This document shows positions 4,646 to 64,000 of a stretch of 64,000 nucleotides of DNA, piece by piece (positions within the stretch are counted from its first letter, which is position 1; each line of letters starts with the position of its first letter). The stretch lies in contig OZ287718.1 of the NCBI GenBank assembly GCA_965649825.1, forward strand, positions 120,796 through 184,795. Direction: 5' to 3'. This DNA comes from Penicillus capitatus (Eukaryota > Plantae > Chlorophyta). Both the position numbers and the translations under genes were made by a program. The notes beneath the pieces are model-generated. The model was not told where the DNA came from, searched no databases, and saw nothing but the letters and a program-made list of their open reading frames with translations.

Positions 4646-4764
4646 CGTTGAAGCTGCTCGCTCGTATTGCATTTGTATATACACAAGAGCAACAACAACA
4701 ATGATTAAACGAATGAGAATAAGCAAGCGTCATCCGATCTATCCGTCCTGTCTCTGTTAGATCA

Positions 4765-39835: not shown

Positions 39836-40902
39836 TCCGACGTACTTCTTTCCAGAGGTCATCTATGGATGTCTGTTTATCCACTCTCGTCCCTTGCAGC
39901 ACGTTTTGCAGGGAATGATTGAACAAATGTGGCTTTCAGGTAGATCTACGTTTCGAGAAGCAGGCAGCCTTATCCTCAAATGAGTACTCTGTTCTCAAAG
40001 AGTCTTGCATATATGTAGCATCTAGTACTGGCACGAGACAGAAATCTCTCTTGTCTACAACAACCAAAACCAGAATCATTTTTTACACTGAACCTTTTTT
40101 GCGGTCGGATGAAAAATCCCGTTTGCCAAATCATTGACAGAAGTGTGGGTATATATATCCATGCTTTTCCTCTTCACTTGACAGTATTCGAAAACAGGAG
40201 ATCTTCCATCAAGGCGATGGCTTTACCGTTCTTGTTGTGTAGCACACTGATCTTTCTTCATCGTTTGTTTGTTGTTTTCGCATTACTAGCAGAAAAAAAG
40301 TCACCGTGCCGATCAGCACAGAAGCGTGTTTTTGGCTGATCCATTCCTTTTTATTTTCCTCACTAAAAAAATCATCACAATCACAGTCGCCATCGATCAA
40401 TTTCCAACGCCAAAGAAATCGTTGAATGATGGTTGACCCTGTCAATAGCACGCACGCATTGCAAGTTCTAGCGTTATCATTCATCGCTGAAAGTTCTTTG
40501 ATTGGCGTTTTTCTTCCTCGTTTTCGTTATTTTTGACAGTTTAAAGGTCTTCTGTGAGTAATGACTAAGCTGCTCTGCACGGCTGAAAACGAACGCTGTT
40601 TTTATTGCCAGGGGCAAGTTTATTCTGGATAGTGTACAGATTTAATTCATCCATTTCCTCCTGACACTACTAGGGAACCATCAAAGGGAGATCCAGATCT
40701 ATTGAGGAATCGACATTCTGTTTGAGCGTGTCAGCTTCGATCTTGTCAAAAAAGTGCCTATGCAGATACATGTATTGTACAAATTGAGATACGCGAGTGA
40801 TTTGCGTGTGGTCATTGTTGTCTGGGATGTGTGAGTGAGTGAGTGAGTCCTAAAAGAATAAGGATAGCTGTTACAGTGCAGCTGTCTCTTCCACACATAA
40901 GG

Positions 40903-42492
40903 CTAGATCATGCGAACCTCGTAGTTACCAGCCATGGTGATATACCTCACCCAAGGCAATGCCTGATAACCACTCTTTTCGATCACTTTCAAATACCGGA
41001 CTTGTATGCCCGAGACTGTGTAGTATGGGATCTCGAATTTGACTTTGATAGGAGGCATGCGGCCTGATGCGTCATCCTCTGCTTGAACAGACGGTAAACT
41101 GAACTGACATCTCAGCAGATACTCCTTTCCACCGGGAAAGCTTTTGATTTTCCACACCAACGCCTCATTGTCCGGCTCATAAGTTGCAGATCCCTGAGAT
41201 GTTCTCACAGATGGTGTCGTGGCATCCGATGGAAGGGGGACGTCGATCTGCACATTGATGGCAGCCGACCTCTCTTTGAACTGCGACCGTGCTTTGACCA
41301 GGTATTCTGTTCGACTCCTGCTGTGTTTCTCAACAGTGGCTTCGATCCAAATCAAAGGTCTAAAGGAGTCAATCATTGATAACGTGTGTGTCAGTGATGG
41401 ATCTGCTGCTGTGAGCACTTGATGTTCTGACTCAGACGGTAATTCATGAGATCGAAGTTCCCGTCTGGGGGAATGAAAGAAATCGTGCGATCATTCTCAA
41501 AACGAGCGAGACGAACACACTGATGAAACTTAATGTCTTCCAAATCAACTGCTTTGTTTACTCCACGACCTTGGGATTGAAAGAGTACCTGCAGAAAGAA
41601 CATGTCCCGTTAACACTCATCACCAATAATCGCCGACATCTCGATTACTTTGTCGTTCAATCCCAGTTTGCATTCAGGCATACCACTTAGAAATGTTCGC
41701 ATTTTCAGAGCACCGACGACCTCAGATTGAACAACAAGTCCATTTGTGTTGACGAGAAGATTGACACTTTCCACAACGTCCAAAAACACTTCATTCTTCT
41801 TATGTTTGATCCCTTCCGAGCGCCACGAAACCACATTGGTCACCGCCATCGGAGGCTTTTGGATCTATCCCACAGCAACGGATAAACGGATGGATGGATC
41901 GGTATCTATCGTAATGCATTCTGGGTGCTTTCTCTTACCTCCATGCGATGCGCATCCGTTTTGATGAATTCGGAAAGTATTTTGCCCTCTGTGAACTGCG
42001 GATATCCAAAATCCATAACCTGGATTCAGATCACAAAAACAAGACGCCTTCCACCCTTGCTTGTTTCCTGGATAGAGCTTGCTTCATCAAGCAGTTCGTA
42101 GACAATGACAAAGTTGTCTCTGAGGGATTCTTCTTCCAATTCTTCAAAGTACTCTTTGAATACATCCACCAGACGATGTAGGAAGAGCACAACAGAACTC
42201 GCATTGATATTCGAGCGTGTCATTGCCAGAAGGTAAAGATTCGAATGCTGTGTCCAAACATACGTGATTCCTTCCATCAGTACAAGAACACTCAATGGAA
42301 AGGCTCGGCGTTGAGCGCAGAGGATTGATTACCATCGTCGTAGACGACTGGGGTCAAGTGTCCTCCCTCTTCTAAGTCGTTCAGCTTATTAAAGAACCGT
42401 TCTGCTTGACTGCTGGGAATATCGCCACGGTAATCCCTGCTGAGGATGATTCTGCCTTTCGTGTCGAGGAAGTGCAGCGCCGACACAGCCAT
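40903..42492 (-). CDS. AP1M: AP-1 adaptor complex subunit mu, multi-exon
   Basis: SRDYRGD, LRDNFVIVYELLDE, VSWRSEGIKHKKNEVFLDV, KFHQCVRLARFENDRTISFIPPDG, GYQALPWVRYIT. Confidence 0.96.
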
Positions 42493-42671
42493 CCGCGACG
42501 ATTCCGCTTTTCAGGTTTCGTTGATATCCCTCCCGGTCAGTAGAGTGCGAGAGAGATGCAGAGGGAGACCAATCATCCCTCGTCACCATCATCATTATTT
42601 TCTCAATGGCGTCGTACTCCTATCATTAGTGCCTCCATCATGCTCTAGGCGCCATCCCTTCACCAGTGATC

Positions 42672-43957
42672 ATGCAGACAGGCGTTCTGAGTGCACTGAA
42701 ACATGAATTTGGCACTGCATTCGGGGGACCAGTGCTGAATTCGACGCTATCTGCGACGGCTCTCTATATTCTGAATGGAAAGTATTCACCTTCGAGTAGA
42801 TGTCGTTTCCCAGCCGGTGGCGCGAATTGCGATGCTCCAACATCCAGATACGTACGCCCTGCTTATAGATCTGCAAGATCCCCTGACCGACGATCGCATG
42901 TGTGGCGCTGCAGGATGACTTCATGTACTGCCCCAGAGTCAAAAGCTTCAATGAAGTTTTCTCCCCTCGGACAGTGACCTTAATCCTGGCAAAGAAGTAT
43001 GTCCCTGCTTCACAAGATGCACACTAATCTTGATTCTCTTTATTCCTTTGCATCTCATGGAGATATTCTGTGATAGTTTGTTCGTAAATATCATGATAAA
43101 GATGTCTCGATACATCGCTGAAAGTTGTCAGGAACTGCAAGAAGCAGAAGATGAAGTCAGTCCTGGACTCCTGTTCTCAGCGTAACCTGATTTTTGTTGC
43201 CAGGATCGCGAACCCGAGATGCCAGATTTTCCTCCTCTTGAAGGGGCTGTCAAGAATGGGCTGCTGGGATCGTTACGTCAGGCCACTGTTCTGTTTGTGA
43301 GGTGCGTCAATGGGGTGGGAACATGGACGACAAACATGTGCTCTCAGATGGATTTATGATCAGTGTGCCCATGCCCTACTTTCAGCTCGTTTTGCTTTCA
43401 AGATGTTGAGAGGTATGGACACCCATCAAGCCATGACCAGCATGTCCTTTGAAGCTGGCTGTCATTTCCTGCAGACTATCGCAAAGAAGTGTTGGATGTT
43501 CTCTTGAAGATGCCCAACAGGCTTCATATGATCAGTCCTGTTTATACAATCTCGATGGAGAGTAAGAAGCTCTCTGTCTAAATCAGGAGCTTTGTATCTT
43601 GTGTGTTCTTAATTCTTAGCAAGCTACACATGGCTTCTGGCAGACTTTACCGTGGCTCTTTTTTTCGCTACCATAAGGTATTCCTATGTGTTAATTTGCC
43701 TGGACAATTCCTCAGAGTGTTCTCCATTCAGAATGTTCTATGTGAAGGACAAGACGCAAAGACGTGAGTATTGGTTGAGATGCATGGGATTTCAGGCCGC
43801 CAAGAACGTTTGTCAGTTATTTGTGTCGCCATTGGGAGCCGTCTTTGGAGTCTTACTGACAAAGAGCGTGAGAGGAACGCTTGTCGGATACAATGTGGCA
43901 GAAATCACACTCACTGCTGCCATGGAGATGACCTTAGTTGCTTACAACAGCAAGTAG
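42672..43957 (+). CDS. Hypothetical multi-exon protein with hydrophobic C-terminus
   Basis: A chain of short stop-free segments flanked by plausible GT/AG sites: DDFMYCPRVKSFNEVF, DREPEMPDFPPLEG, WIYDQCAHALLSARF, KNVCQLFVSPLGAVFGVLL. No family recognised and splicing not fully resolved. Confidence 0.4.
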
Positions 43958-44529
43958 GAACGGTCGCTCGTCGCACATCATCAAAAATCTCCCGCCTGTT
44001 TAAGATAATGCTGCTTCGATGTCCCATGTCTGCGTCGTTCTTTCCATCGATGTGTTCTCGTCTCGAATTCTCGCTTCTTCCCCTGAAATTACCCGTTCGT
44101 ATCCATGCACTGGTTAGACTTGAATCTCTGAAAAGAATTTGTTTCCGCGAGACGCTGTCGTCCAACCCTGTATCTCATGATAGTAGGCTAAAGCGAAGCG
44201 ACAGGCGACCGCAGATTCCAACCGCTCTCCACGTGAATTCGGTTCATATTGTATCACGGTCACATCAGATTCATTAGATGACCAATCCCGCACGTCTGTG
44301 GACTGTCTAAGGCCAAAAAGACAGCAATGTCGTACTGTAAATGAGGTTTGTGGGCCATATAAGCAGACGGTTGTCCTTCACTTCATGTCCGCGTACATAG
44401 TAACAAAAATATGCTCGCTTAGGTCGCCATAGAAATCTTACTGCTGGTAATTGCTCGAATTTTTACCCTCAATCTTTTCACCCGGACGAACGTGAGGTCG
44501 ACACGCACTCACAGACTCGTGTTTCCGAG

Positions 44530-45772
44530 ATGGAGAATGCAATGCCATTCGTTTGTGGACAATACTGCCTGTCTGCGCCTCGGCCATACGCATTGTACCC
44601 ATATTCCATCCTGGCGATATCACAGGGTTCAGGCGACCATTGCCATTCCGCCGGAGACATGGGTCGGCCGACGAGTCGCAGTTCGACGAAAGAGAATCTC
44701 AGCAGTCCGTCCGCCTGGGTAAGGAGCCCGACGTTTGAAAATCGGAGAGGACTTCAGGCGCCATTCGACATGGATACTCTCAAGGCGATGATTCAAGCGG
44801 CACGGCCGGACTGCGGAGAAGTACGCAAAGCCATTCTTTCGTGTACATTCAAGCCCCGAGAAAGAGCATTCACGCGTTTGATAAATATGTGTGGTCGACA
44901 AAAGGAATCGCGAAAAGCGATGGAAGTGTTTGCAACTATGCGAGAGTGTCGTGGTTTGCGACCAAACACTTACACATATTCGGCACTCATCTCCGCTTGC
45001 AGCAACTCCGGCGACTGGGACTCAGCTGTTGACGTATTTCACCGAATGAAACAGGCTGCTGTCAGTGATCCAGGATGTCGTCCTAATCAAGTAAGGGCCT
45101 GTTCTTACACAAGATCGTCCTTCAGCAATCTGTTGATCTTGCTAGGTGACATACAACGCCATCATTGCTGCCAGTGAACGCGGAGGTCGATATGACGTTT
45201 GTTTGGCATGTTTTCAAGACATGGTTGATAGCGATGCCTTACCAGACAGTGTAGCATATTGCTCGGCAATAAATGCCTGTCAAAAAATGGGACAATGGAG
45301 AGAGGCGGAGAGAATTCTTTCAGACATGCATGAGCGGGAATTCGTTGCTAGTGTCGGGGTCTATGCTTCAATGATCGAGCACTATGCGACGTATTCCTGC
45401 TGGGAGTCTGCTTTGGATTTGTTTATGACGATGCAGGTGCTGGGACAGACTGTCGACGTTCGTTGTTGTGAGGGACTAATGATGGCATTCGTCTCAGGCC
45501 AGAAACCAGAAATGGCCTATCATCTTCTCGAATCCATGCGGACGAATGATATCCAGATCAACACATCAACGTTTTCAGCTGCGTTACGCATCATCACGGC
45601 TGCTTCACGATGGGAATTGGCATACGATCTCGTCACTGCTCTCCATGACAATGGCAAGGACATTGCACTGGAGACGGTGTTGCCTGTTATCCAGTCTATG
45701 AAGTTGGCGGGGAAACAAGAGATGGCCACGGGACTGGAAACCATCGTTAAGCAGTTAAACACCGATAGTTAG
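44530..45772 (+). CDS. Pentatricopeptide repeat protein, paralog C (one intron, about 45091-45144)
   Basis: FKPRERAFTRLINMCG, PNTYTYSALISACSNSG, DPGCRPNQ/VTYNAIIAASERGG. Confidence 0.88.
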
Positions 45773-46416
45773 TCGAATCGTGCTCTTGTACAAGGATAAT
45801 TGCGTTTGGGTGATTGCAACCGGGCTGTGAGGTATGCAATCATGAAAGGTCGCAATTATCTGTCATGTATAACAAGCACGTTCGTACGAGTATGGGACAT
45901 GTAACGTTGGGTTTACAACCGATATCCGTAAGGATGCATGCTTTGCCTAATGCATGCTTTACTTATTCTTTCGTGGTGTATTTGTTCTTCATTCCCATGT
46001 TGTCGATAGATCCCTTTTTCGTCGTATGTTCGTGAAAATCACAGATCTATTGCTCTCTCTCCATCTGCTGTTGAAAACTGGCTCTCTAAAGCATCCGCAG
46101 CGAAACATTTTGTCCCTTTATATTTTCTCCTTCACTATAGAAGAAATGCGTTTTCAGGATATCGGACTCCTTGAAATACGTCAAGCTTAGCAATACAATC
46201 TTTTTGACAAGGAATGTTATCATCCTCCTTGCCTTGCTTTTCTATGCAATATTGTGAAACTTCAGAAAGTTGATGAATGTGATTGCTGGATTCAGCTTCG
46301 TTAAAATCCAATATCCTGATCACAGCATGCTGATAATCTGTTTGATCTTATTCACCTTTTGGAGATGTCTTGGCATTTCTCTTCTTTGGTGCTTAAATAA
46401 TTCTCTCTTTGTGTGA

Positions 46417-48900
46417 TTGTTCTTCAGTGTAGTGTTTCTTTCTGCTTCGTACCGCGAAAATCGATGCATCAGGCCGATGAGAAACATGAATGAGCCAATG
46501 ACGATGAATATCGACAGAGTACCTATTCAAACATATCGAGTTCGTGGGCAACGTTGTTATCCGCAACAGGACACCGACGCGATTCGCCAGTTGTCTCTCT
46601 CTCTCGCGACGACCAAGAAGAGGATTCTTTTCTTTGCAGACTTGCGCAGAAAAGCAGAACACTTAATCCCAACTGCCTGGTCGCTGCGTCGCCAGTCCAC
46701 TGTGCAACCAGTCGCTGTCTCATTACCCACCAGGATGTCCTTCTTTCAGGAACCAATCACTTATCACCACTGCACTGAGTACGATGGTATTGACGCTACT
46801 GAGAACAAGCTCAACAGTGTCCTGAAAGGTAATTTGAGAAAGAAAATGATCCATCATGCACGGACATGCATTCCATTCTTCGAATTCCACAGACTCAGGA
46901 AGTCAATCGTCACGTGGAGATACTTCATTGAACAGGCACACTTTCAGAAAATAAAGAGTATCATAGAGCAGACTTCTCTCTTCGGACATGAAAAGATCTA
47001 TCGAATGCTTCAGAAGATCCGGGAAATCTCCCTCCGCGCGCATCACGTCCACTTCTTCAGATACCTCGTTGAACCGTCGTTAGATGACATCCATCTAAGA
47101 ACGCCAGCGAAATGACAGTAAGGAGTCTTCGCATGGTTCAGAAAGGTAATTGCAGGAAGGTACATTTCTTCGACCTGGAAAACGAGTATCGGCACAGCGT
47201 CATCGAGCCGCAATTTTCGCTGTCTTGAAAGAATGTCAGAAAGTGTTAAAGAACGTGTCCAGCCCGATTGAAAGTCGTCACCAGTCCGTTCAGTGGCCAC
47301 TCGACAGTATCCAGTTGGAATTTGACAAGTGTTCGGATGAGCTTTGGCATATCAATGACACGTGAAAGCAGACCATTCCAGCGACAAGGTATGCATGTGC
47401 AGATAGACGCGGTGAGATCGATGATTTCGTATCAGAATTCTTCAAGAAACAGAGACCTGGACGAGAGAGCTCCTTCGGCTTGTAGGTCTGGCAGATTTTA
47501 TACTGCAAACAGAGGTTGCCCGTGTCTTGTATACCACTTCCGAAACTGTTCTGTGCCAAATGAAATGGACGAGAAGCCCATGATTCGAGTAGAACTCTCC
47601 TGCACAACGGACCCGTTCACAATGCCTCTGAAACAGATCCAAGTGCTTTAAGGCTCGATGCCTTGAGCTTCCTAACTGTTATTGACAAACAATCCGCACG
47701 CAGGCTGTAAGAGACGCTATTGATCCGATGATTGACTTTGTCCAACAGATCTGTCTGCCACAGAGGATAACCGGAGCGAGGAATGTACCGATTCTTATGA
47801 AAGAATGGAACGAGAAAGAAGACATCGACTATGTACTATGGTGCGAGCGTTAGCTGAAGAAGGCGTGGTACGAACAATGCAATGAACACAGCAAAATCTA
47901 TAGTTAAACGGCATTGATTCACGGCGCAGAGCGTATTCGAGAGGAGAATGTGTCTGTCTTACAAAAGTGCCTGAGCGAGGCTCGTCGATGGATGGAATTG
48001 ATGTCACAGACACTGACCCTTTGTGTCGATCTTTCGACGGAAAGCTCGATACTTCCCAGATCACATAAGCTGAAGAAGAAGTACTATCGCTCAGATGTGT
48101 AATGCATTGTCGTTGTGCGACGGCAGCTTAAGCGAATGTTCGATGTAATGCAGGCTACAGAGAGGTCATTTGTGGCAGCAATCAGCCTTTTTCTGCACAG
48201 GAGGACTCCATCTCGATTTTAAAAGTTGAGAAATACTAACTAGCGTCGACAGAGGTATTCGATGACTCGATCAGGTGTTTGTGGATAGCCTTGTTAATAG
48301 ATGCTCACAGATCGTCGAACCGAACAGCTACAGCGCGACGTCATTCAGTAACCTCTCTATGGAACGCGAATATAATTTCTCATTCTGTAGAACATGCAGC
48401 GTCGACCATTTCTGGTTGACGATTTCTTCCAATTCTGTCGAGATGCACGACAATTCTGTTAGACAACGAAGAAAGTGAAGGCGGAGGAAGAGACTATCGA
48501 TAAAGGTCATCGCTATCCTTAAAGTCAATCGCGTCATTCTACCATATCAGCAGAATCAAGGAGGATTCTGTTGCACACATCATCTTCTGAGACAGCTCTC
48601 AAGGTGACCGTGCGCAACACGGGGAAAGCTCTGTTCTACGCGAAACAGCTCTTCACGATGGACTCCACTTCGTCCAAGAGAGAGAATCTCTGATGGTGTA
48701 ATCCCTTCATGCAGAAAAAAATGCAGTAGAAGAAACTGTCAGGGTATAGTTGGCAGTTCGAACTGAATTCTGTGAGTGGTTTAGATTTCTCTTTGCAGCT
48801 ACCGAAAGAGCAGATTCCATTGCGTGAAATGCGCAGAACGAAGGTGGCCAAGATGCAGATCAAAATAAGAAAAGTCGACAAAACGACGCCTTACGATCAG
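46417..48900 (+). CDS. Protein resembling the N-terminal tail of DNAH6-type axonemal dynein heavy chain, with no motor domain; boundaries approximate
   Basis: IPFFEFHRLRKSIVTWRYF..YRMLQKIREI, ELLRLVGLADFILQTEV, KPMIRVEL and RRPFLVDDFFQF recall successive DNAH6 N-terminal segments. This is similarity from memory, not a search. Confidence 0.4.
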
Positions 48901-49046
48901 ACATCTCAAAATTGGAGATACCACTGAACAATTGCTTTACACTGTAGCCGGCGGCTTTCACTCACGGTAGACAACGAAATACATTTTTTCAGGAGGTTTA
49001 AAGAGAATGCAAAAATCTGTATTGCTTTGCTCAACATGACATTGTG

Positions 49047-51148
49047 CTAAAAAGAACAGTGACCAGGGTATCGAGGAAAAGGAATGACATCTCTTATGTT
49101 CTCCATCCCTGTCACAAATTGAACGAATCGCTCAAATCCCAAACCGAACCCGGAGTGCGGCACTGATCCATATTTCCTCAAATCCAAATACCACCAGTAG
49201 TCATCAGGATTCAGACCTCCTTCCTTAATTCTTGCAGTCAACTTGTTGTAGTCATCTTCACGTTGACTTCCCCCAATCAATTCACCGATCCCTGGAACAA
49301 GGATATCCATGGCAGCAACTGTCTTTCCATCTTCGTTAAGCTTCATGTAGAATGGCTTTATGTCTTTTGGATAATCGGTCACCACAACTGGTTTTCCGCT
49401 AAAGATGACTTCTGCCAGATGTCGCTCGTGCTCACTTTGCAGGTCATTTCCCCACTCCACGGCGAACTCAAACTGCTTCCCAGACTCTTGGAGCAGATTC
49501 ACTGCATCTGTGTATGTGAGTCGCTTGAATCCTGACGTCGACAGAAGCTGCAACAACAGTATCTCACACAGCACAATGCAGAAGGCCTCTCACTTCTAGA
49601 CGACTGATGAGTCCTCTTTGATAAAATCGATCGAAAAGAGCAAGATCTTCTGTGCATTCTGTCAGAATTCTCTTCAGACAGTACTTGAAGTAGGCTTCGG
49701 CACATGAAATATCTTGAGAAAGGTCACAAAATGCCATCTCAGGTTCCAACATCCAAAACTCTGCCAAATGTCGTGTCGTGTTTGAGTTCTCTGCTCTAAA
49801 CGCTGGGCCAAATGTGTAAACGCGACCTAGTGCACAAGCATATGCTTCGGCATTCAATTGACCTACGTCATCCAGCAATTGATCAGTGCTATCCCTTGGC
49901 ATACGTACCAGATACAGTTAGGAATGAGGCTTGCCCGAAAAAATCCTCCGATGACCGAGGAGGTTCGTTGACAGCAGAAGACTACGAGAGTACAGCGGGT
50001 TTAGCATTTCAGTGATGAGATTTTCCCACACCTCGTTTTTTGTTTTGTTAGGTGCGGAATTGTCATCGGTAAGAAGAGTTGTCACACGAAACATCTCTCC
50101 TGCTCCTTCGCAGTCAGATCCAGATATGATCGGTGTCTGTATATAGTAGAAGCCATTTGATCGGAAAAAGTCATGAGTTGCACAGCAAAGCTCACTGCGA
50201 ACGCGCATAACGGCACTCATTGTGTTCGTCCTACAGCGCAGATGGGCAATGCCTATACTGCTATATCACCTAGCATTGTTCGAGAAGACATGCATCTTTA
50301 CTTCTCAGAAACTCCAGAGAGTGTCTTTTCTTTTGTAACGGATAGCTTGCAGGATCTGCATCACCCAGGAGGAGCAATTTATTCGCCTGCAACTCAATCT
50401 GCACAGATGCACACTATCACTAGTGAATGATGTATTGCTTAGATCACCGTACTTTTTGCTTTCCGCCTGGAGATTCGACAAGTTTTCCTGTCACTGTAAT
50501 TGCAGCTCCTGTATTGATTTTGCCTTCCTTCACAAGATCATAACCCGGCACATCGTCCTGGAGTATCACTTGTAGTGTTGATAGGGTCGATCCATCCGAC
50601 ATCTGTAATGAACGACACAGAATCATGAAACCTGAAGTTATCACACTCGTAACCTCGACGAACGAAAAGCTTTTCTGGGATCTCAGTGTACGCACCCACC
50701 CACTTATCTCGAACTGCTCTCCAACACGTGACACTCCTCCATCTTTCTCACCCTAAGCAACAAATGATGATGCATTCGCTGGCAGTTTAGCATGTTAGAC
50801 TGGAACAATGATATTGCGAATCTGATCTCCAAAACCAGGTATTCTGATCAGAGACTCTATCTTTGAAGATTTCTCTTCTGATGTAATCGCCACATCATTT
50901 CTCGAAGACTCGGAGCGAATTGGACTGATTGAGGTTCTTCGGTGCGTTCTTACTAAATGCCAGATGTCAGCAGCAGAACAAACAGAAAACACTGTACGGA
51001 TCGTGCCGTCGCAAGGGATTCCACTTTCCGGAAGCCTTGAGTCTACGAGAGCAGACCCGCCAGTAGATCGGAGGCCTCTTTTGGAAACTAGCAGTGTGCG
51101 AGTTCTGGATATCGCCATCGCTGAACGTAAAACCGAAGAGCGGATCAT
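49047..51148 (-). CDS. asnS: Asparaginyl-tRNA synthetase, organellar/bacterial-type, multi-exon
   Basis: [82 protein letters not shown]. An Arg/Ser-rich presequence starts at ATG 51148 (51181 also possible). Confidence 0.95.
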
Positions 51149-52922
51149 TCTAATCAACTCGTTTAGCCTGAATAAATTCATCGTTCGACGCCATGGCGAT
51201 CGAATCAAAGAGAATAAGGGTTGTCGTCGAGTCATGGAAGGAGATGTGCGTGCTCACGGACGCATGGGTTTCTTTAATGCGTGCACAGCAAAGCAGCAAG
51301 CAGACAGTGGTTCTCAGCATCGTCGATGAACTCGTTTGTGCAGTCTGTAGTGAAGAACTCCGTCCTCCGTCTTCTTTTAAACGTGAGCCGTCACTTCTTA
51401 CCAAGAAACAGCTTTAGCAACTTCTTGTGGCCGAATACAGTTGACTCGTCCGAACTTTTTAATGCAGAGGCCATTCCAAGCAAGAGAGACTCGTGGTTGC
51501 GGGGAATCCTTCCATCTGGATAATGCATATCAGCCCGCCCTCCTTAGAAAAGAACGAACGAGCTGTGAACATGTAGTCGATTTGCACGTACACGAAAGGT
51601 CATCTCTCTTGACAAGCATTTAGGACAACAGCAGTCGACAGTGTAATCAGGCATCTTGAAACACTCTTAATGGAAAAAAACTTGCAAAAAACCATTTGAG
51701 GAGTATTCGAATGGGAAAGGAGAGCGCCACAGTTCTCTTTCGTCGTTTGGTTTTTTACATTCTCCGCGAGCAAAACCTCTTTATAAAAGAAACTCGTTGA
51801 TCAAGCAAACAGAATCGGATAGCAACAGAGCAAGGAAGAATGTGTATGTAGATGAAGACTAGCAGATCTTCGGTGATTCTAGAGAGACATGTCAAATGAG
51901 GTCAACTTACAGCAGCTGAATGTGAGAGGCAACGATGGCAAGTCATGACGGTAGTCTCTCTCTGCTATATTAGAAATTTGATCACATACACCTTGTATGC
52001 AATCTTTAATGTGACCTCAGTTTGCTTCAACGAGTGTCGTCGAGGTACTGATTGGAGCTTCTGCAGTGCGTCAAATGAGGTTTTTTAGATTTAAAGCTTA
52101 TCTCAAAGAATCCCGTATCTCGAGTGGAATTATAGAATGTCTCTAGATGTATGTACGATCAAAAGTATTCTAACTAGCTTTAGTCTTTTGATAGCATTAC
52201 TTACTGTGTGGTGGATAGACTACTTAAACCACATCAAGACCTGCAAAAATAAACCGTTGGATACTACTGAAGATGTCTGTTTTTCATCGACATTTAGCGG
52301 CGTGCGTGATGAACATGACGAATGACTTCAAATGAACACACAGGTCATTACCAATCAGTGATTTTTTGACGTTCTCTCCTCTCCCTGGGTAGTCTTGATG
52401 TCTATAGTTGCATTTATTTGAATGCTATGTCGACTAATAAATTAATTCCCTCTAGACGTCCAATCGATCTTAAAAGTTGTTTATAGCATTCATCTACTTT
52501 CATTCGACTCTTGATCCTGCATCACTTTATTGTTGAAACAGTTTCTATTACCCTCTTCGATGCCGGTAATGATTTGGTTAGATAGTCATTCGTGATGGTA
52601 GAAACGAAGGTCTGGGTACCATGATTGGCTGCATAGTCTCCCGAACAACTGCTCAATAGAATCGGAGTCCTTGATTTCAATAGTTATAGCAGATTGTTGA
52701 AAGGATCTGGCTGTCACATCGTGACTGTCTAGATTTCCCAGGGTTCTGTCTCCGAGTGGGCGCTTATAAGGGGTTCATTGTCACTTGTCCAGGCACATCC
52801 TGGGTATAAATCTGTGAATGTGGACATGTAGATACCCTAGCTTTGTAATCAGTAAAGCCTTCCGCTGAAAGGTCTGTGTGCTTGATCCAGTAGATGGTGA
52901 TGTGACGTGTGAGGACATCCAG

Positions 52923-53549
52923 TCAGTCTAAGGAAATGTCTTGAGATGCTTCATCTCTTAGGCACTCGACAGGATGACAAAGATCAATTATGTGTGCACG
53001 TATTGTATGAACGATTTCCGGCATCTCGGTTTCGAAAGGTAATGCAACACTATACAGATTCGCCCTCGGAAGATCGTCTTTGACAAAAGCACTTAGTAGC
53101 CCTTGACGGGCAATTTGCACAGGGATCTCGCTGGAGACTGTAACGTCCGCATATTCAAACACTCTGTCAAAGTTATACATTTTAGAGAGTTCCAGAAAAT
53201 CAGCCTAAAAGCAATTGTCCTTATATAGATGTTCACAATCCGTCAACCAACTTACGAGTAAATTCACGTGCTCAAACAAATTAAAATCGATAGAGGACAT
53301 TCGAATGGCTGGACGAAGGCTGTTTAAAATAAGAATCCATGCCTTTCTTGTTGCCTCTTCGAGAAACACTATCACAGTCTCTGCGCAGTCCGTGAGCGCT
53401 GCTCGGAAAGTCGGTGACGCCATCTTCACCAAAACAGCATAGGTCTTCAACAAGGAACCGTTAGCGAACTGACGCCTCAGGTCTCCATCGCGACTGTGTT
53501 CACACGTGCCGTCGAAAAGGAAGAAATTTGAGTTTGCGCCACTATTCAT
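52923..53549 (-). CDS. BTB/POZ-domain protein, 2 exons; possibly prematurely truncated
   Basis: GDLRRQFANGSLLKTYAVLVKMASPTFRAAL..VFLEEATRKAWILILNSLRP resembles BTB. A CTC|GTAAGT...TTTTAG intron joins it in phase to ADFLELSKMYNFDRVFEYAD. Confidence 0.6.
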
Positions 53550-55869
53550 CGTCTCAAAAGCTGGACTGCTCGACTCTAACTCCGTCCTCAGAAAGCTACG
53601 ACACCGAAGAACGACTTCAAAAACACGGACCGTGTTAAGAACAATAACCGTAAGAATGCACAGAACTCGTTCCTAGACCAGAGGCAGCCACGTGTCGCAC
53701 GAAGAGATCTTAGTCATCCAATGATGCGACATCGAAGGCGGACAAACCATTCGCCGTCACAGATCGACAAACAGGACGCGCCCTTTTGAAAATGATCTAT
53801 AGGAGGTAAGGGTATTTAACAACATTCCAGCCGACATGCGAAGCCTCCTGGTGCGGTCACGTGCTCAAGTCCTCGACGCCACATCAGGTGAAACTGGTCG
53901 TGTCAGTACAATATCGAAGACACTCTTGCGCGCGGCGGATCGTTTCGAGCACCCAACGTCGCGTCAGGTGTAACGCGTGCTGTCTGTCAGCGACTCGCAG
54001 AAGTGCTCTATGACGCCGGCGACACGGTCGAGCGAGGGTGGGAATGTGTCGGCGGGGTCGAGTGGATGCTGTAGGACCCTTGGTTGGAGCCCGACGGCGG
54101 CGTCCTCGGGCTGTGGCGCGGCCTTTCCGGATTCGACATTTCGGCACACTGCGGCCGACGGCGGGCCCACCGTCGGCAGTCTTCGACGCAGACGGGTGCG
54201 GGACGGCTCGGGACACGCCGCGGATGCCAATCGGTGGAGGCTCGTTTGGCTCTGGGCGGTGTCGTACGGAGTTGAAATCGTGGCGGTTACGTCGCATCAG
54301 GTGTAACCTGGCCTGTCAGTACGATCTGGAAGTGCACGACGACGCCGGCGACACGGTCGAGCGAGGGCGGGGATGTGTCGGCGGGGTCGAGTGGATGCCG
54401 ACGGACCCTTGGTTGGAGCCCGGCGGCGGCGTGCTCGGGCTGTGGCGCGGCCTTTCCGGATTCGACATTTCGGCACACTGCGGCCCACGGAGGGCCCACC
54501 GTCGGCAGTCTTCGACGCAGACGGGTGCGGGACGCCTCGGGACACGCCGCGGATGCCGATCGGTGGAGGCTCGTTTGGCTCTGGGCGGTGTCGTACGGGG
54601 TTGAAATCGTGGCCGTTACGTCGCATCAGGTGTAACCTGGCCTGTCAGTGACTCGCAGAAGTGCACGACGACGCCGGCGACACGGTCGAGCGAGGGCGGG
54701 GATGTGTCGGCGGGGTCGAGTGGATGCGGACGGACCCTTGGTTGGAGCCCGACGGCGGCGTCCTCGGGCTGTGGCGCGGCCTTTCCGGATTCGACATTTC
54801 GGCACACTGCGGCCGACGGCGGGCCCACCGTCGGCAGTCTTCGACGCAGACGGGTGCGGGACGCCTCGGGACACACCGCGGATGCCGATCGGTGGAGGCT
54901 CGTTTGGCTCTGGGCGGTGTCGTACGGAGTTGAAATCGTGGCGGTTACGTCGCATCAGGTGTAACCTGGCCTGTCAGTACGATCTGGAAGTGCACGACGA
55001 CGCCGGCGACACGGTCGAGCGAGGGCGGGGATGTGTCGGCGGGGTCGAGTGGATGCCGACGGACCCTTGGTTGGAGCCCGGCGGCGGCGTGCTCGGGCTG
55101 TGGCGCGGCCTTTCCGGATTCGACATTTCGGCACACTGCGGCCCACGGAGGGCCCACCGTCGGCAGTCTTCGACGCAGACGGGTGCGGGACGCCTCGGGA
55201 CACGCCGCGGATGCCGATCGGTGGAGGCTCGTTTGGCTTTGGGCGGTGTCGTACTTGGTTGAAATCGTGGCGGTTACGTCGCATCAGGTGTAACCTGGCC
55301 TGTCAGTACGATCTGGAAGTGCACGACGACGCCGGCGACACGGTCGAGCGAGGGCGGGGATGGGTCGGCGGGGACGAGTGGATGCCGACGGACCCTTGGT
55401 TGGAGCCCGACGGCGGCGTCCTCGGGCCGTGGCGCGGCCTTTCCGGATTCGACATTTCGGCACACTGCGGCCGACGGCGGGCCCACCGTCGGCAGTCTTC
55501 GACGCAGACGGGTGCGGGACGCCTCGGGACACGCCGCGGATGCCGATCGGTGGAGGCTCGTTTGGCTCTGGGCGGTGTCGTACTTGGTTGAAATCGTGGC
55601 GGTTACGTCGCATCAGGTGTAACCTGGCCTGTCAGTACGATCTGGAAGTGCACGACGACGCCGGCGACACGGTCGAGCGAGGGCGGGGATGGGTCGGCGG
55701 GGTCGAGTGGATGCCGACGGACCCTTGGTTGGAGCCCGACGGCGGCGTCCTCGGGCCGTGGCGCGGCCTTTCCGGATTCGACATTTCGGCACACTGCGGC
55801 CGACGGCGGGCCCACCGTCGGCAGTCTTCGACGCAGACGGGTGCGGGACGCCTCGGGACACACCGCGGA

Positions 55870-58800
55870 TGCCAATCGGTGGAGGCTCGTTTGGCTTTGG
55901 GCGGTGTCGTACGGGGTTGAAATCGTGGCGGTTACGTCGCATCAGGTGTAACCTGGCCTGTCAGTGACTCGCAGAAGTGCACGACGACGCCGGCGACACG
56001 GTCGAGCGAGGGCGGGGATGTGTCGGCGGGGTCGAGTGGATGCGGACGGACCCTTGGTTGGAGCCCGACGGCGGCGTCCTCGGGCTGTGGCGCGGCCTTT
56101 CCGGATTCGACATTTCGGCACACTGCGGCCGACGGCGGGCCCACCGTCGGCAGTCTTCGACGCAGACGGGTGCGGGACGCCTCGGGACACACCGCGGATG
56201 CCGATCGGTGCAAGCTCGTTTGGCTTTGGGCGGTGTCGTACTTGGTTGAAATCGTGGCGGTTACGTCGCATCAGGTGTAACCTGGCCTGTCAGTACGATC
56301 TGGAAGTGCACGACGACGCCGGCGACACGGTCGAGCGAGGGCGGGGATGTGTCGGCGGGGTCGAGTGGATGCCGACGGACCCTTGGTTGGAGCCCGGCGG
56401 CGGCGTGCTCGGGCTGTGGCGCGGCCTTTCCGGATTCGACATTTCGGCACACTGCGGCCGACGGAGGGCCCACCGTCGGCAGTCTTCGACGCAGACGGGT
56501 GCGGGACGCCTCGGGACACGTCGCGGATGCCGATCGGTGGAGGCTCGTTTGGCTCTGGGCGGTGTCGTACGGAGTTGAAATCGTGGCGGTTACGTCGCAT
56601 CAGGTGTAACCTGGCCTGTCAGTACGATCTGGAAGTGCACGACGACGCCGGCGACACGGTCGAGCGAGGGCGGGGATGTGTCGGCGGGGACGAGTGGATG
56701 CTGACGGACCCTTGGTTGGAGCCCGACGGCGGCGTGCTCGGGCTGTGGCGCGGCCTTTCCGGATTCGACATTTCGGCACACTGCGGCCGACGGAGGGCCC
56801 ACCGTCGGCAGTCTTCGACGCAGACGGGTGCGGGACGGCTCGGGACACGCCGCGGATGCCAATCGGTGGAGGCTCGTTTGGCTCTGGGCGGTGTCGTACG
56901 GAGTTGAAATCGTGGCCGTTACGTCGCATCAGGTGTAACCTGGCCTGTCAGTACGATCTGGAAGTGCACGACGACGCCGGCGACACGGTCGAGCGAGGGT
57001 GGGGATGTGTCGGCGGGGACGAGTGGATGCTGTAGGACCCTTGGTTGGCGACCGACGGCGGCGTCCTCGGGCTGTGGCGCGGCCTTTCCGGATTCGACAT
57101 TTCGGCACACTGCGGCCGACGGCGGGCCCACCGTCGGCAGTCTTCGACGCAGACGGGTGCGGGACGCCTCGGGACACGCCGCGGATGCCAATCGGTGGAG
57201 GCTCGTTTGGCTTTGGGCGGTGTCGTACGGAGTTGAAATCGTGGCGGTTACGTCGCATCAGGTGTAACCTGGCCTGTCAGTACGATCTGGAAGTGCACGA
57301 CGACGCCGGCGACACGGTCGAGCGAGGCCGGGGATGTGTCGGCGGGGTCGAGTGGATGCCGACGGACCCTTGGTTGGAGCCCGGCGGCGGCGTGCTCGGG
57401 CTGTGGCGCGGCCTTTCCGGATTCGACATTTCGGCACACTGCGGCCCACGGAGGGCCGACCGTCGGCAGTCTTCGACGCAGACGGGTGCGGGACGCCTCG
57501 GGACACGCCGCGGATGCCGATCGGTGGAGGCTCGTTTGGCTCTGGGCGGTGTCGTACGGAGTTGAAATCGTGGCGGTTACGTCGCATCAGGTGTAACCTG
57601 GCCTGTCAGTACGATCTGGAAGTGCACGACGACGCCGGCGACACGGTCGAGCGAGGGCGGGGATGGGTCGGCGGGGTCGAGTGGATGCCGACGGACCCTT
57701 GGTTGGAGCCCGACGGCGGCGTCCTCGGGCCGTGGCGCGGCCTTTCCGGATTCGACATTTCGGCACACTGCGGCCGACGGAGGGCCCACCGTCGGCAGTC
57801 TTCGACGCAGACGGGTGCGGGACGCCTCGGGACACGCCGCGGATGCCAATCGGTGGAGGCTCGTTTGGCTCTGGGCGGTGTCGTACGGGGTTGAAATCGT
57901 GGCGGTTACGTCGCATCAGGTGTAACCTGGCCTGTCAGTGACTCGCAGAAGTGCACGACGACGCCGGCGACACGGTCGAGCGAGGGCGGGGATGTGTCGG
58001 CGGGGTCGAGTGGATGCGGACGGACCCTTGGTTGGAGCCCGACGGCGGCGTCCTCGGGCTGTGGCGCGGCCTTTCCGGATTCGACATTTCGGCACACTGC
58101 GGCCGACGGCGGGCCCACCGTCGGCAGTCTTCGACGCAGACGGGTGCGGGACGCCTCGGGACACGCCGCGGATGCCAATCGGTGGAGGCTCGTTTGGCTC
58201 TGGGCGGTGTCGTACTTGGTTGAAATCGTGGCCGTTACGTCGCATCAGGTGTAACCTGGCCTGTCAGTACGATCTGGAAGTGCACGACGACGCCGGCGAC
58301 ACGGTCGAGCGAGGGTGGGGATGTGTCGGCGGGGTCGAGTGGATGCCGACGGACCCTTGGTTGGAGCCCGACGGCGGCGTCCTCGGGCCGTGGCGCGGCC
58401 TTTCCGGATTCGACATTTCGGCACACTGCGGCCGACGGCGGGCCCACCGTCGGCAGTCTTCGACGCAGACGGGTGCGGGACGCCTCGGGACACGCCGCGG
58501 ATGCCAATCGGTGGAGGCTCGTTTGGCTTTGGGCGGTGTCGTACGGGGTTGAAATCGTGGCGGTTACGTCGCATCAGGTGTAACCTGGCCTGTCAGTGAC
58601 TCGCAGAAGTGCACGACGACGCCGGCGACACGGTCGAGCGAGGGCGGGGATGTGTCGGCGGGGTCGAGTGGATGCGGACGGACCCTTGGTTGGAGCCCGA
58701 CGGCGGCGTCCTCGGGCTGTGGCGCGGCCTTTCCGGATTCGACATTTCGGCACACTGCGGCCGACGGCGGGCCCACCGTCGGCAGTCTTCGACGCAGACG

Positions 58801-61660
58801 GGTGCGGGACGCCTCGGGACACACCGCGGATGCCGATCGGTGCAAGCTCGTTTGGCTTTGGGCGGTGTCGTACTTGGTTGAAATCGTGGCGGTTACGTCG
58901 CATCAGGTGTAACCTGGCCTGTCAGTACGATCTGGAAGTGCACGACGACGCCGGCGACACGGTCGAGCGAGGGCGGGGATGTGTCGGCGGGGTCGAGTGG
59001 ATGCCGACGGACCCTTGGTTGGAGCCCGGCGGCGGCGTGCTCGGGCTGTGGCGCGGCCTTTCCGGATTCGACATTTCGGCACACTGCGGCCGACGGAGGG
59101 CCCACCGTCGGCAGTCTTCGACGCAGACGGGTGCGGGACGCCTCGGGACACGTCGCGGATGCCGATCGGTGGAGGCTCGTTTGGCTCTGGGCGGTGTCGT
59201 ACGGAGTTGAAATCGTGGCGGTTACGTCGCATCAGGTGTAACCTGGCCTGTCAGTACGATCTGGAAGTGCACGACGACGCCGGCGACACGGTCGAGCGAG
59301 GGCGGGGATGTGTCGGCGGGGACGAGTGGATGCTGACGGACCCTTGGTTGGAGCCCGACGGCGGCGTGCTCGGGCTGTGGCGCGGCCTTTCCGGATTCGA
59401 CATTTCGGCACACTGCGGCCGACGGAGGGCCCACCGTCGGCAGTCTTCGACGCAGACGGGTGCGGGACGGCTCGGGACACGCCGCGGATGCCAATCGGTG
59501 GAGGCTCGTTTGGCTCTGGGCGGTGTCGTACGGAGTTGAAATCGTGGCCGTTACGTCGCATCAGGTGTAACCTGGCCTGTCAGTACGATCTGGAAGTGCA
59601 CGACGACGCCGGCGACACGGTCGAGCGAGGGTGGGGATGTGTCGGCGGGGACGAGTGGATGCTGTAGGACCCTTGGTTGGCGACCGACGGCGGCGTCCTC
59701 GGGCTGTGGCGCGGCCTTTCCGGATTCGACATTTCGGCACACTGCGGCCGACGGCGGGCCCACCGTCGGCAGTCTTCGACGCAGACGGGTGCGGGACGCC
59801 TCGGGACACGCCGCGGATGCCAATCGGTGGAGGCTCGTTTGGCTTTGGGCGGTGTCGTACGGAGTTGAAATCGTGGCGGTTACGTCGCATCAGGTGTAAC
59901 CTGGCCTGTCAGTACGATCTGGAAGTGCACGACGACGCCGGCGACACGGTCGAGCGAGGCCGGGGATGTGTCGGCGGGGTCGAGTGGATGCCGACGGACC
60001 CTTGGTTGGAGCCCGGCGGCGGCGTGCTCGGGCTGTGGCGCGGCCTTTCCGGATTCGACATTTCGGCACACTGCGGCCCACGGAGGGCCGACCGTCGGCA
60101 GTCTTCGACGCAGACGGGTGCGGGACGCCTCGGGACACGCCGCGGATGCCGATCGGTGGAGGCTCGTTTGGCTCTGGGCGGTGTCGTACGGAGTTGAAAT
60201 CGTGGCGGTTACGTCGCATCAGGTGTAACCTGGCCTGTCAGTACGATCTGGAAGTGCACGACGACGCCGGCGACACGGTCGAGCGAGGGCGGGGATGGGT
60301 CGGCGGGGTCGAGTGGATGCCGACGGACCCTTGGTTGGAGCCCGACGGCGGCGTCCTCGGGCCGTGGCGCGGCCTTTCCGGATTCGACATTTCGGCACAC
60401 TGCGGCCGACGGAGGGCCCACCGTCGGCAGTCTTCGACGCAGACGGGTGCGGGACGCCTCGGGACACGCCGCGGATGCCAATCGGTGGAGGCTCGTTTGG
60501 CTCTGGGCGGTGTCGTACGGGGTTGAAATCGTGGCGGTTACGTCGCATCAGGTGTAACCTGGCCTGTCAGTGACTCGCAGAAGTGCACGACGACGCCGGC
60601 GACACGGTCGAGCGAGGGCGGGGATGTGTCGGCGGGGTCGAGTGGATGCGGACGGACCCTTGGTTGGAGCCCGACGGCGGCGTCCTCGGGCTGTGGCGCG
60701 GCCTTTCCGGATTCGACATTTCGGCACACTGCGGCCGACGGCGGGCCCACCGTCGGCAGTCTTCGACGCAGACGGGTGCGGGACGCCTCGGGACACGCCG
60801 CGGATGCCAATCGGTGGAGGCTCGTTTGGCTCTGGGCGGTGTCGTACTTGGTTGAAATCGTGGCCGTTACGTCGCATCAGGTGTAACCTGGCCTGTCAGT
60901 ACGATCTGGAAGTGCACGACGACGCCGGCGACACGGTCGAGCGAGGGTGGGGATGTGTCGGCGGGGTCGAGTGGATGCCGACGGACCCTTGGTTGGAGCC
61001 CGACGGCGGCGTCCTCGGGCCGTGGCGCGGCCTTTCCGGATTCGACATTTCGGCACACTGCGGCCGACGGCGGGCCCACCGTCGGCAGTCTTCGACGCAG
61101 ACGGGTGCGGGACGCCTCGGGACACGCCGCGGATGCCAATCGGTGGAGGCTCGTTTGGCTTTGGGCGGTGTCGTACGGGGTTGAAATCGTGGCGGTTACG
61201 TCGCATCAGGTGTAACCTGGCCTGTCAGTGACTCGCAGAAGTGCACGACGACGCCGGCGACACGGTCGAGCGAGGGCGGGGATGTGTCGGCGGGGTCGAG
61301 TGGATGCGGACGGACCCTTGGTTGGAGCCCGACGGCGGCGTCCTCGGGCTGTGGCGCGGCCTTTCCGGATTCGACATTTCGGCACACTGCGGCCGACGGC
61401 GGGCCCACCGTCGGCAGTCTTCGACGCAGACGGGTGCGGGACGCCTCGGGACACACCGCGGATGCCGATCGGTGCAAGCTCGTTTGGCTTTGGGCGGTGT
61501 CGTACTTGGTTGAAATCGTGGCGGTTACGTCGCATCAGGTGTAACCTGGCCTGTCAGTACGATCTGGAAGTGCACGACGACGCCGGCGACACGGTCGAGC
61601 GAGGGCGGGGATGTGTCGGCGGGGTCGAGTGGATGCCGACGGACCCTTGGTTGGAGCCCG
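55870..61660. repeat. Higher-order repeat of 8 monomers (2632 bp), about 2.2 copies
   Basis: Diagnostic variants recur at exactly 2632 bp. For example, gtgcaagctc occurs at about 56210, 58842 and 61474, and identical ORFs start at 56020/58652/61284 and 57007/59639. Confidence 0.93.
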
Positions 61661-62989
61661 ACGGCGGCGTGCTCGGGCTGTGGCGCGGCCTTTCCGGATT
61701 CGACGTTTCGGCAGATTGCGACCCACGGAGGGCCGACCGTCGGCAGACTTCGACGCAGACGGGTGCGGGACGCCTCGGGACACGTCGCGGATGCCGATCG
61801 GTGGAGGCTCGTTTGGCTCTGGGCGGTGTCGTACGGAGTTGAAATCGTGGCCGTTACGTCGCATCAGGTGTAACCTGGCCTGTCAGTACGATCTGGAAGT
61901 GCACGACGACGCCGGCGACACGGTCGAGCGAGGGCGGGGATGTGTCGGCGGGGACGAGTGGATGCTGTAGGACCCTTGGTTGGCGACCGACGGCGGCGTC
62001 CTCGGGCCGTGGCGCGGCCTTTCCGGATTCGACATTTCGGCACACTGCGGCCGACGGCGGGCCCACCGTCGGCAGTCTTCGACGCAGACGGGTGCGGGAC
62101 GCCTCGGGACACGCCGCGGATGCCAATCGGTGGAGGCTCGTTTGGCTCTGGGCGGTGTCGTACGGAGTTGAAATCGTGGCCGTTACGTCGCATCAGGTGT
62201 AACCTGGCCTGTCAGTACGATCTGGAAGTGCACGACGACGCCGGCGACACGGTCGAGCGAGGGTGGGGATGTGTCGGCGGGGACGAGTGGATGCTGACGG
62301 ACCCTTGGTTGGAGCCCGACGGCGGCGTGCTCGGGCTGTGGCGCGGCCTTTCCGGATTCGACATTTCGGCACACTGCGGCCGACGGAGGGCCCACCGTCG
62401 GCAGTCTTCGACGCAGACGGGTGCGGGACGGCTCGAGACACGCCGCGGATGCCAATCGGTGGAGGCTCGTTTGGCTCTGGGCGGTGTCGTACGGAGTTGA
62501 AATCGTGGCCGTTACGTCGCATCAGGTGTAACCTGGCCTGTCAGTACGATCTGGAAGTGCACGACGACGCCGGCGACACGGTCGAGCGAGGGTGGGGATG
62601 TGTCGGCGGGGTCGAGTGGATGCTGACGGACCCTTGGTTGGAGCCCGACGGCGGCGTCCTCGGGCTGTGGCGCGGCCTTTCCGGATTCGACATTTCGGCA
62701 GAGTGCGGCCGACGGCGGGCCCACCGTCGGCAGTCTTCGACGCAGACGGGTGCGGGACGCCTCGGGACACGCCGCGGATGCCAATCGGTGGAGGCTCGTT
62801 TGGCTTTGGGCGGTGTCGTACTTGGTTGAAATCGTGGCGGTTACGTCGCATCAGGTGTAACCTGGCCTGTCAGTACGATCTGGAAGTGCACGACGACGCC
62901 GGCGACACGGTCGAGCGAGGGCGGGGATGTGTCGGCGGGGTCGAGTGGATGCCGACGGACCCTTGGTTGGAGCCCGGCGGCGGCGTCCT

Positions 62990-64000
62990 CGGCCTGTGGC
63001 CCGACCCTTCCGGATTCCACATTTCGGCAAACTGCGACGTACTGAGGGCCGGCCGTCGGCGGAATTCGACGCGGACGGGTGCGGGACGCCTCGGGACACG
63101 TCGCGGATGCCAGTCGGTGGAAGTTTGTCCCTCTTTGGGCGCTGTCGTACGGAGTTGAAATCGGGCACCAGACGTCACATCGGGTGTAACCTGGCCTGTC
63201 AGTACGATCTGGAAGTGCACGATGACGCCGGCGACGTGGTCGAGCGAGGGTGGGGATGGGTCGGCGGGGTCGAGTGGATGCCAAGGGACCCAAGTTTGGC
63301 GACCGACGGCGGCGTCCTCGGCCTGTGGCCCGACCCTTCCGGATTCCACATTTCGGCAAACTGCGACGTACTGAGGGCCGGCCGTCGGCGGAATTCGACG
63401 CGGACGGGTGCGGGACGCCTCGGGACACGTCGCGGATGCCAGTCGGTGGAAGTTTGTCCCGCTTTGGGCGCTGTCGTACGGAGTTGAAATCGGGCACCAG
63501 ACGTCACATCGGGTGTAACCTGGCCTGTCAGTACGATCTGGAAGTGCACGATGACGCCGGCGACGTGGTCGAGCGAGGGTGGGGATGGGTCGGCGGGGTC
63601 GAGTGGATGCCAAGGGACCCAAGTTTGGCGACCGACGGCGGCGTCCTCGGCCCGTGGCGCGGCCTTTCTGGATTCCACATTTCGGCAAACTGCGACTTAC
63701 TGAGGGCCGACCGTGGGCGGAATTCGACGCGGACGGGTGCGGGACGCCTCGAGACACGTCGCGGATGCCAGTCGGTGGAAGTTTGTCCCGCTTTGGGCGC
63801 TGTCGTACGGAGTTGAAATCGGGCACCAGACGTCACATCAGCCGTAATTTGACCTGTCAGTACGATCTGGAAGTGCACGATGACGCCGGCGACGTGGTCG
63901 AGCGAGGGTGGGGATGGGTCGGCGGGGTCGAGTGGATGCCAAGGGACCCAAGTTTGGCGACCGACGGCGGCGTCCTCGGCCTGTGGCGCGGCCTTTCTGG
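62990..64000. repeat. Diverged satellite subfamily with the same 329-bp period
   Basis: Monomers carry many shared substitutions, e.g. ggattccacatttcggcaaactgcgac, ggaattcgacgcggacgg and aaatcgggcaccagacgtcacatc. Confidence 0.9.

Follow-up and report, generated by a model that had tools for sequence, protein, structure and literature searches.

A 329-bp tandem array at the end of the window

The window analyzed here, by which we mean the whole 64,000-nucleotide stretch of contig OZ287718.1, carries eukaryotic genes with introns, encoding three PPR paralogues, MCM, a PB1-domain protein, the mu subunit of an AP complex, NifU and an MDHAR-like protein, and it ends in a GC-rich tandem array with a unit of 329 bp. 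An earlier note on this DNA had proposed that the array is a candidate centromeric, or else subtelomeric, satellite. The underlying observation was confirmed: the 329-bp satellite is real, occurs at several loci, is non-coding and displays a higher-order structure. We think that it is probably a species-specific subtelomeric (chromosome-end) satellite of a green alga, with an architecture like that of the Sultan, Subrin, Subrecs and Subrel repeats.

Using Tandem Repeats Finder (TRF), we found the array at positions 54000 to 63997, with a period of 329, 30.4 copies, 95% matches, 0% indels and a score of 17423. A diverged partial monomer (phase ~285-329) pushes its start back to ~53,955-53,965, in agreement with the start at 53965 given in the earlier note, and the end of the window is reached still inside the array. 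Cut at a constant step of 329 bp, the array shows 95-99% identity to the consensus in monomers 0-26 and 84-89% in monomers 27-30. It contains two subfamilies, A and B, with an identity of 84.5% between them: after 27 A monomers come others showing 92.4, 96.7, 98.8 and 100% identity to the B consensus, which was taken from another contig (L009; the contigs are listed in Table 1). The strict conservation of length that had been noticed holds in the window, while a few variants of 324, 330 and 333 bp are found at other loci.

The claim that the array is rich in GC and CpG is borne out by a GC content of 0.66-0.68, compared with 0.44-0.51 across the preceding 54 kb (0.67 versus 0.475 overall), by 14.5 CpG per 100 bp versus 5.0 in the flank, and by a CpG observed/expected ratio of 1.32 versus 0.88. 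This ratio of 1.32 shows no sign of deamination decay and says nothing on the heterochromatic state of the array. The GC skew is +0.17, the G-rich strand being the plus strand. In addition, the proposed higher-order structure is present as a block of eight monomers that occurs twice, monomers 6-13 being 100% identical to monomers 14-21 and monomer 22 being the same as monomer 6; the identity between monomers at lag 8 is 98.2%, compared with ~96% at other lags.

Each typical monomer had been credited with an 8-bp dyad and with a length near that of two nucleosome repeats. The dyad, GCCGACGG-N8-CCGTCGGC, is indeed exact in 22 of the 30 window monomers, always at phase 154, and it is perfect in 107 of 176 monomers when all loci except the pure-B L009 are counted, with a 7/8 variant that is common and dominates at several other loci. 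It is, however, lost in the B subfamily, where three or four of the eight pairs are destroyed (32 of 32 L009 monomers, as well as the last three full monomers of the window). Moreover, 12.5% of composition-matched shuffled monomers hold some perfect 8-bp inverted repeat with a 3-20-nt spacer, and the dyad lies outside the minimum-energy single-strand fold of the monomer, whose fold z-score is -1.97. On these four grounds we rejected a conserved binding site or a cruciform. As for the nucleosomal length, the unit does measure 329 bp, but a half-unit of ~165 bp was not detectable, given that the best internal self-alignment score was matched by 75 of 300 shuffles. A dimer of ~165-bp units was therefore rejected, and the two-nucleosome idea is left resting on length.

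ORFs of 186-204 aa run through the array. They carry no Pfam domain, their homologues are only other copies of the satellite, and 329 is not a multiple of 3, so that a protein-coding repeat was rejected; the ORFs are by-products of GC richness. A search for structural RNAs gave no tRNA in the window and no Rfam match, either there at the gathering threshold or in three monomers at E<=1. Given this lack of Rfam and tRNA matches, and with no rRNA gene in arrays of more than 10 kb, the repeat is not an array of 5S rDNA, snRNA, SL RNA or tRNA genes, nor a sub-repeat of an rDNA spacer.

The satellite at other loci

To find further copies, we searched 5.8 billion protein clusters with a spurious 186-aa ORF of the monomer and obtained 17 clusters, every one of them from ENA. 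Eight of the 17, together with one cluster obtained from a window gene, were looked up and led to nine satellite contigs, all from a single HiFi metagenome assembly (ERZ25074695, with metaMDBG-style contig names). Exact-pattern scans for the core of the 329-mer gave 0 matches in JGI metagenome contigs and 0 in GTDB genomes. One of the contigs, L002, represents the window locus itself (hereafter W): identity is 99.75% in the flanks, and the first 15 monomers agree base for base. The two arrays then differ by exactly one 8-monomer unit of 2,632 bp, L002 carrying one copy of the block; either the alleles vary in copy number or one assembly has collapsed the repeat. Similarly, L006 represents the L008 locus as a haplotig, with 99.5% identity. 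The satellite is thus present at eight independent loci (W/L002, L003, L004, L005, L007, L008/L006, L009 and L011), and the single-locus array that the earlier note had set against its own proposal does not apply.

In all nine contigs the array lies at the contig end, and none of them shows sequence beyond it. Long stretches of array, in places of at least 16 monomer-kb, were left unresolved. When the consensus was mapped on all loci, every one of the eight independent loci showed the same order, from unique DNA through plus-oriented monomers to the contig end, a uniformity expected with a probability of ~0.008 (2 x 0.5^8) if polarity were random, as it should be for head-to-tail centromere arrays reached from either arm or for blocks dispersed at interstitial sites. 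The non-coding array, with its G-rich strand running 5' to 3' outward, lies at the outer end of many otherwise unrelated gene-dense arms. Neither the 54 kb of flank in the window nor the flanks of the other loci contained satellite copies, the scan covering these loci rather than the whole genome. Such uniform polarity toward contig ends is what would be expected if the sites of the arrays are chromosome ends. Because the repeat stands at the ends of at least eight assembled chromosome pieces and always in one direction, it is most likely a subtelomeric repeat of the kind known in green algae.

We next compared the monomers with each other, using a divergence matrix and nearest-neighbour counts for 208 of them. 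Divergence is 1.7-6.6% within a locus, versus 5-8% between A-type loci, and nearest neighbours come mostly from the same locus. The change from A to B seen in the window recurs at the distal end of L006, where the last monomer is B, and in L009 the B type, almost pure and 1.7% divergent, extends over more than 10 kb. A distal B subfamily common to the loci would explain why the assembler stopped there. Changes of orientation were observed inside two arrays, at position 10789 of L003 and at positions 10356, 10633 and 11232 of L009, with breakpoints in the region of a CCGACGG/CCGTCGG motif; the inversions may be genuine foldbacks, or minimizer-graph assembly may have produced them as artefacts.

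The proximal edges of the arrays were compared by aligning the six junctions. The start phase is common to five of them (W, L003, L005, L007 and L011). A 100-bp edge element, 60-69% similar to a normal monomer end, is shared by L003, L005 and L007 (84-86% identity), with a weaker match of 67-70% in W. A longer spacer common to the loci was rejected: BLAST at 1e-10 gave just two short matches, one of 61 bp between L003 and L005 at the junction, and one of 79 bp from W and L002 to L003, located ~1.2 kb from the array.

Telomere-type repeats are short and G-rich, such as (TTTAGGG)n or (TTTTAGGG)n. Scanning both strands for three tandem copies of seven motifs and for two tandem copies of ten motifs, we found none in the window or in the 11 loci.

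Flanking genes and the syntenic end of a related alga

Each locus has its own flank, and four of the six junctions have ordinary genes at a distance of 0.4-4 kb from the array. In the window, the AsnRS gene is 3 kb away and two small ORFs are 0.4 kb away (Table 1); a Sec23/24-like gene lies 0.6 kb from the array in L003, while a kinase and Vma12 are encoded near it in L008 and L011, respectively. A retroelement stands beside the array at only two of the six junctions, L005 and L007, and the two elements are unrelated. That of L005 (positions 3455-6336) is gypsy-like, with a reverse transcriptase followed by an integrase, and adjoins the array. Beside the array of L007 (780-4517 and 7028-9119) are a 1,245-aa single-ORF protein with NACHT and HEAT repeats and a LINE (RVT_1, zf-RVT).

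Table 1. Window features at and near the 329-bp array, and contigs that carry the satellite
Feature	Position or contig	Strand	Remarks
Last unique segment before the array	51705..53954		no DNA match to the syntenic stretch in the relative
Two small ORFs in the last unique segment	52923-53180, 53205-53549	minus	no Pfam match
Proximal array edge, a diverged partial monomer of phase ~285-329	53955..53999	plus	from the six-junction alignment
A-type array, 27 monomers of 329 bp	54000..62882	plus	95-99% identity to consensus; G-rich strand on plus
Higher-order repeat, 8 monomers = 2,632 bp	55974..61566	plus	copies 55974-58605 and 58606-61237, then the first monomer again
Example of the 8-bp dyad GCCGACGG-N8-CCGTCGGC	54154..54177		repeats each 329 bp at phase 154
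Distal transition to the B-type subfamily	62883..64000	plus	array runs on past the window
Contig L002	ctg329506		31 kb
Contig L003	ctg340429		724 kb
Contig L004	ctg340175		274 kb
Contig L005	ctg336634		61 kb
Contig L006	ctg332811		41 kb
Contig L007	ctg339926		214 kb
Contig L008	ctg340356		494 kb
Contig L009	ctg340286		341 kb
Contig L011	ctg229990		9 kb

Concerning the host, the AsnRS exon has its best named relative in Monoraphidium neglectum (66%), and the best annotated relative of a protein fusing a FAD-binding/BBE oxidase to a short-chain dehydrogenase (SDR) is that of Caulerpa lentillifera (35%). Judging from these sequences, our best guess is a chlorophyte green alga of a poorly sampled lineage. 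The BBE-SDR fusion, encoded on the minus strand at 11974-15270, has four matches in 5.8 billion proteins, of which the sole annotated one is that of C. lentillifera. Two further features of the window were observed. The three PPR-protein paralogues stand in tandem on the plus strand (32667-33920, 38600-39835 and 44530-45772), within 13 kb and ~10-20 kb from the array, an arrangement also kept in the related alga described below. At 20210-22775 on the minus strand, a repeat of 235-238 bp detected by TRF corresponds to at least nine exon-plus-intron units, each encoding the Kazal-like cysteine motif CxCPxxYxPVCGxDGKTYxNxCxAKC; it is probably a gene for a secreted multi-Kazal inhibitor that grew by duplication of the unit.

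A relative of the window alga is represented by a contig of 1.39 Mb (ENA ERZ26696514, ctg303805, here L010), whose proteins are 88-92% identical to those of the window genes. Positions 39000-51704 of the window align to it at 80-90% nucleotide identity, and synteny then ends, ~2 kb before the array. In the relative, 12.5 kb separate the AsnRS gene from the contig end, and ~2 kb past the end of synteny we found another satellite (L010 1-5636), with a unit of 239 bp made of alternating half-units of 117 and 122 bp. Its copies are 98% identical, its GC content is 0.55, and its G-rich strand also points outward, with a skew of +0.07. The sequence examined starts after the first 2,520 bp of this contig. 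Homology between the 329-mer and the 239-mer was rejected, as they share nothing beyond words of 7-8 bp, and the exact-pattern scan of JGI metagenome contigs gave 0 matches to the 239-mer. The position has thus been kept as a landmark at which assemblies terminate, while the satellite itself has been replaced. A GC-rich minisatellite of four 32-bp copies lies between the 239-bp satellite and the genes of the relative (L010 6251-6377).

Probable chromosome ends and alternative explanations

Green-algal subtelomeres are known to carry species-specific tandem arrays with units of 166-850 bp (PMC8287924, Chaux-Jukic et al.), namely Sultan of ~850 bp in Chlamydomonas reinhardtii, Subrin of ~350 nt in C. 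incerta, Subrecs-I of 319-321 bp and Subrecs-II of 266-327 bp in C. schloesseri, and Subrel of 166 nt (PMC8287924). These arrays have one orientation, are closer within than between arrays, are anchored on a shared spacer, and are unrelated in sister species (PMC8287924). The 329-bp array resembles Subrin and Subrecs in its near-equal monomer length, in its presence on many contigs, mostly without telomeres, in an orientation that fits a terminal position, in a partly shared sequence at its centromere-proximal boundary, and in the unrelated repeats found at syntenic ends of close relatives. Species specificity is likewise observed, given that the ORF of the 329-mer was found in ENA data only, that every cluster looked up came from ERZ25074695, and that the satellite of the relative is unrelated. 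With Sultan, the array shares segmental (higher-order) duplication within an end and probably rarer exchange between ends, as well as an abrupt border with a euchromatic arm that bears genes, and transposons beside some arrays.

There are also differences. The 329-mer has no sequence similarity to Subrin or Subrecs, although none is expected; those arrays are anchored by some telomere-ended contigs, whereas the 329-mer has none; their shared spacers measure ~1.2 kb, compared with ~45-100 bp here; and the 329-mer is far above the GC content of its genome. The Subrecs types never mix on a contig, whereas the present array has A proximally and B distally. Sultan, for its part, is GC-poor relative to its own genome (53% versus 64%), while the 329-mer is GC-rich, and the border of Sultan carries a telomere-like seed. 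After the Sultan array come a transcribed Spacer and a G-rich microsatellite, and CpG hypermethylation of Sultan has been demonstrated; no counterpart of the seed, the Spacer or the microsatellite was seen here.

Several observations weigh against a subtelomeric position. No telomere repeat is present at any contig end; every contig stops inside the array, and we infer the terminal position, with the telomere lying beyond the assembled sequence. No telomere-like seed is evident in the monomer. The edge element is short and absent at two of the six junctions (L008 and L011), unlike the spacers of Chlamydomonas and Coccomyxa, which measure 0.2-1.2 kb. The satellite was found at no more than eight loci. 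The orientation of the monomers switches ~1.5 kb before the ends of L003 and L009, the arms being 89-99% complementary, and if these switches are real, mirror-symmetric arrays could give uniform polarity around an internal locus. Finally, locus-specific, diverged outer A monomers around a homogeneous, common inner B is the classic layering of a satellite centromere.

The latter points lead to the most serious alternative, in which the A-type layers flank a homogeneous, CENH3-binding B core of a regional centromere and contigs break at the core because B is identical between chromosomes. This would account for the long unresolved arrays (at least 16 monomer-kb in places), the higher-order repeats, the passage from A to a B type common to the loci, the strand switches inside L003 and L009, and the turnover of the satellite at the syntenic position in the relative. 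Human alpha satellite and Arabidopsis CEN180 likewise combine a strict unit length, higher-order blocks, strand switches and rapid turnover between relatives, with a homogeneous shared subfamily beside diverged, locus-specific layers. However, those satellites lie between the two chromosome arms and are bordered by pericentromeres rich in transposons and poor in genes; CENH3 defines them, and their sequence is usually AT-rich. The 329-bp array differs in its uniform polarity to contig ends, gene-dense flanks and 67% GC. The same polarity in eight of eight independent loci (P ~0.008) would require mirror symmetry of every centromere, and no contig shows the distal flank of a second arm. Ordinary genes are found within 0.4-4 kb instead of a transposon-rich pericentromere, single elements being present at two of six loci; the start phase and edge element are common to different chromosomes; the array is GC-rich with an excess of CpG; and the dyad is unconserved between subfamilies.

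Moreover, the characterized centromeres of green algae are all transposon-based (PMC11005252), being built of ZeppL/L1 LINE clusters in Chlamydomonas, Coccomyxa and Chromochloris, and of LTR/Copia, L1 and RTEX elements in Chlorella (PMC11005252). They resemble the present loci as repeat-rich regions where assemblies break, but consist of transposable elements rather than of a short-unit satellite, and no Zepp-like cluster adjoins the 329-bp arrays. We therefore regard a centromeric satellite as unlikely, and the specific arrangement in which the arrays would be the outer layers of mirror-image centromeres around a homogeneous B core as a little more doubtful still. If it were nevertheless centromeric, the repeat would be the first satellite centromere in a green alga and would overturn the transposon-only picture. 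Of the two possibilities raised by the earlier note, the centromeric one, which it had put first, is thus the less likely in view of uniform polarity, gene-dense flanks and shared edges, and the subtelomeric one the more likely. The features it had cited in favor of a centromere, namely conserved length, higher-order repeats, a dyad and a size of about two nucleosomes, are not specific to centromeres, as they occur in green-algal subtelomeric repeats of 319-350 bp (PMC8287924).

Another possibility is that the arrays are interstitial, knob-like heterochromatic blocks, or a satellite spread by a mobile element whose terminus would define the start phase. The start phase and edge element common to different loci, and the retrotransposon ORFs directly beside the array in L005 (gypsy-like) and L007 (LINE), would fit this explanation. 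We nonetheless hold it to be improbable: all nine contigs end in the array and none has a distal flank, the uniform polarity relative to contig ends is unexpected of dispersed insertions, the retroelements beside the L005 and L007 arrays are of unrelated kinds and do not occur at the other four junctions, and the 54-kb window flank and the other flanks contain no copies or fragments. An assembly artefact, an RNA-gene array or a coding repeat, which might be suspected from the 100% identical higher-order duplication, the inversions near contig tips and the long ORFs that gene callers predict across the array, is scarcely credible, since L002, an independent contig from another assembly, repeats the junction and the first 15 monomers without a difference, the satellite is present in eight more contigs, and the array has no RNA genes, its ORFs having neither Pfam domains nor homologues other than satellite copies.

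If the arrays are subtelomeric, they may be maintained and reshaped by unequal sister-chromatid exchange or by break-induced replication within an end, which would give both the perfect duplication of eight monomers and the one-unit difference in copy number between the haplotigs. Rarer exchange between ends would homogenize the distal B type. The proximal block of A monomers (~9 kb here) is homogenized within each locus and passes distally into B monomers that hardly differ between loci. Frequent recombination with GC-biased repair may account for the 67% GC and the excess of CpG. By analogy with the Sultan arrays of Chlamydomonas, the satellite probably acts as a buffer of methylated heterochromatin that separates the telomere from the first genes.

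The 329-bp satellite is thus a probable new member of an already described kind of subtelomeric repeat. Three of its properties are unreported for arrays of the Chlamydomonas type, namely a GC content 20 points above that of the genome, an excess of CpG, and a gradual change along the array, from a subfamily specific to the locus on the proximal side to one that loci share on the distal side; these would be useful for studying the exchange of sequence between chromosome ends. In practical terms, the repeat marks assembly breaks in this organism and could serve to orient and count chromosome arms. Should the subtelomeric interpretation be true, a poorly sampled lineage would join Chlamydomonas and Coccomyxa in having one chromosome-end architecture, that is, a uniformly oriented, species-specific array placed on a shared boundary and replaced wholesale between close relatives, which would support a convergent or recurrent evolution of this architecture at the chromosome ends of green algae.

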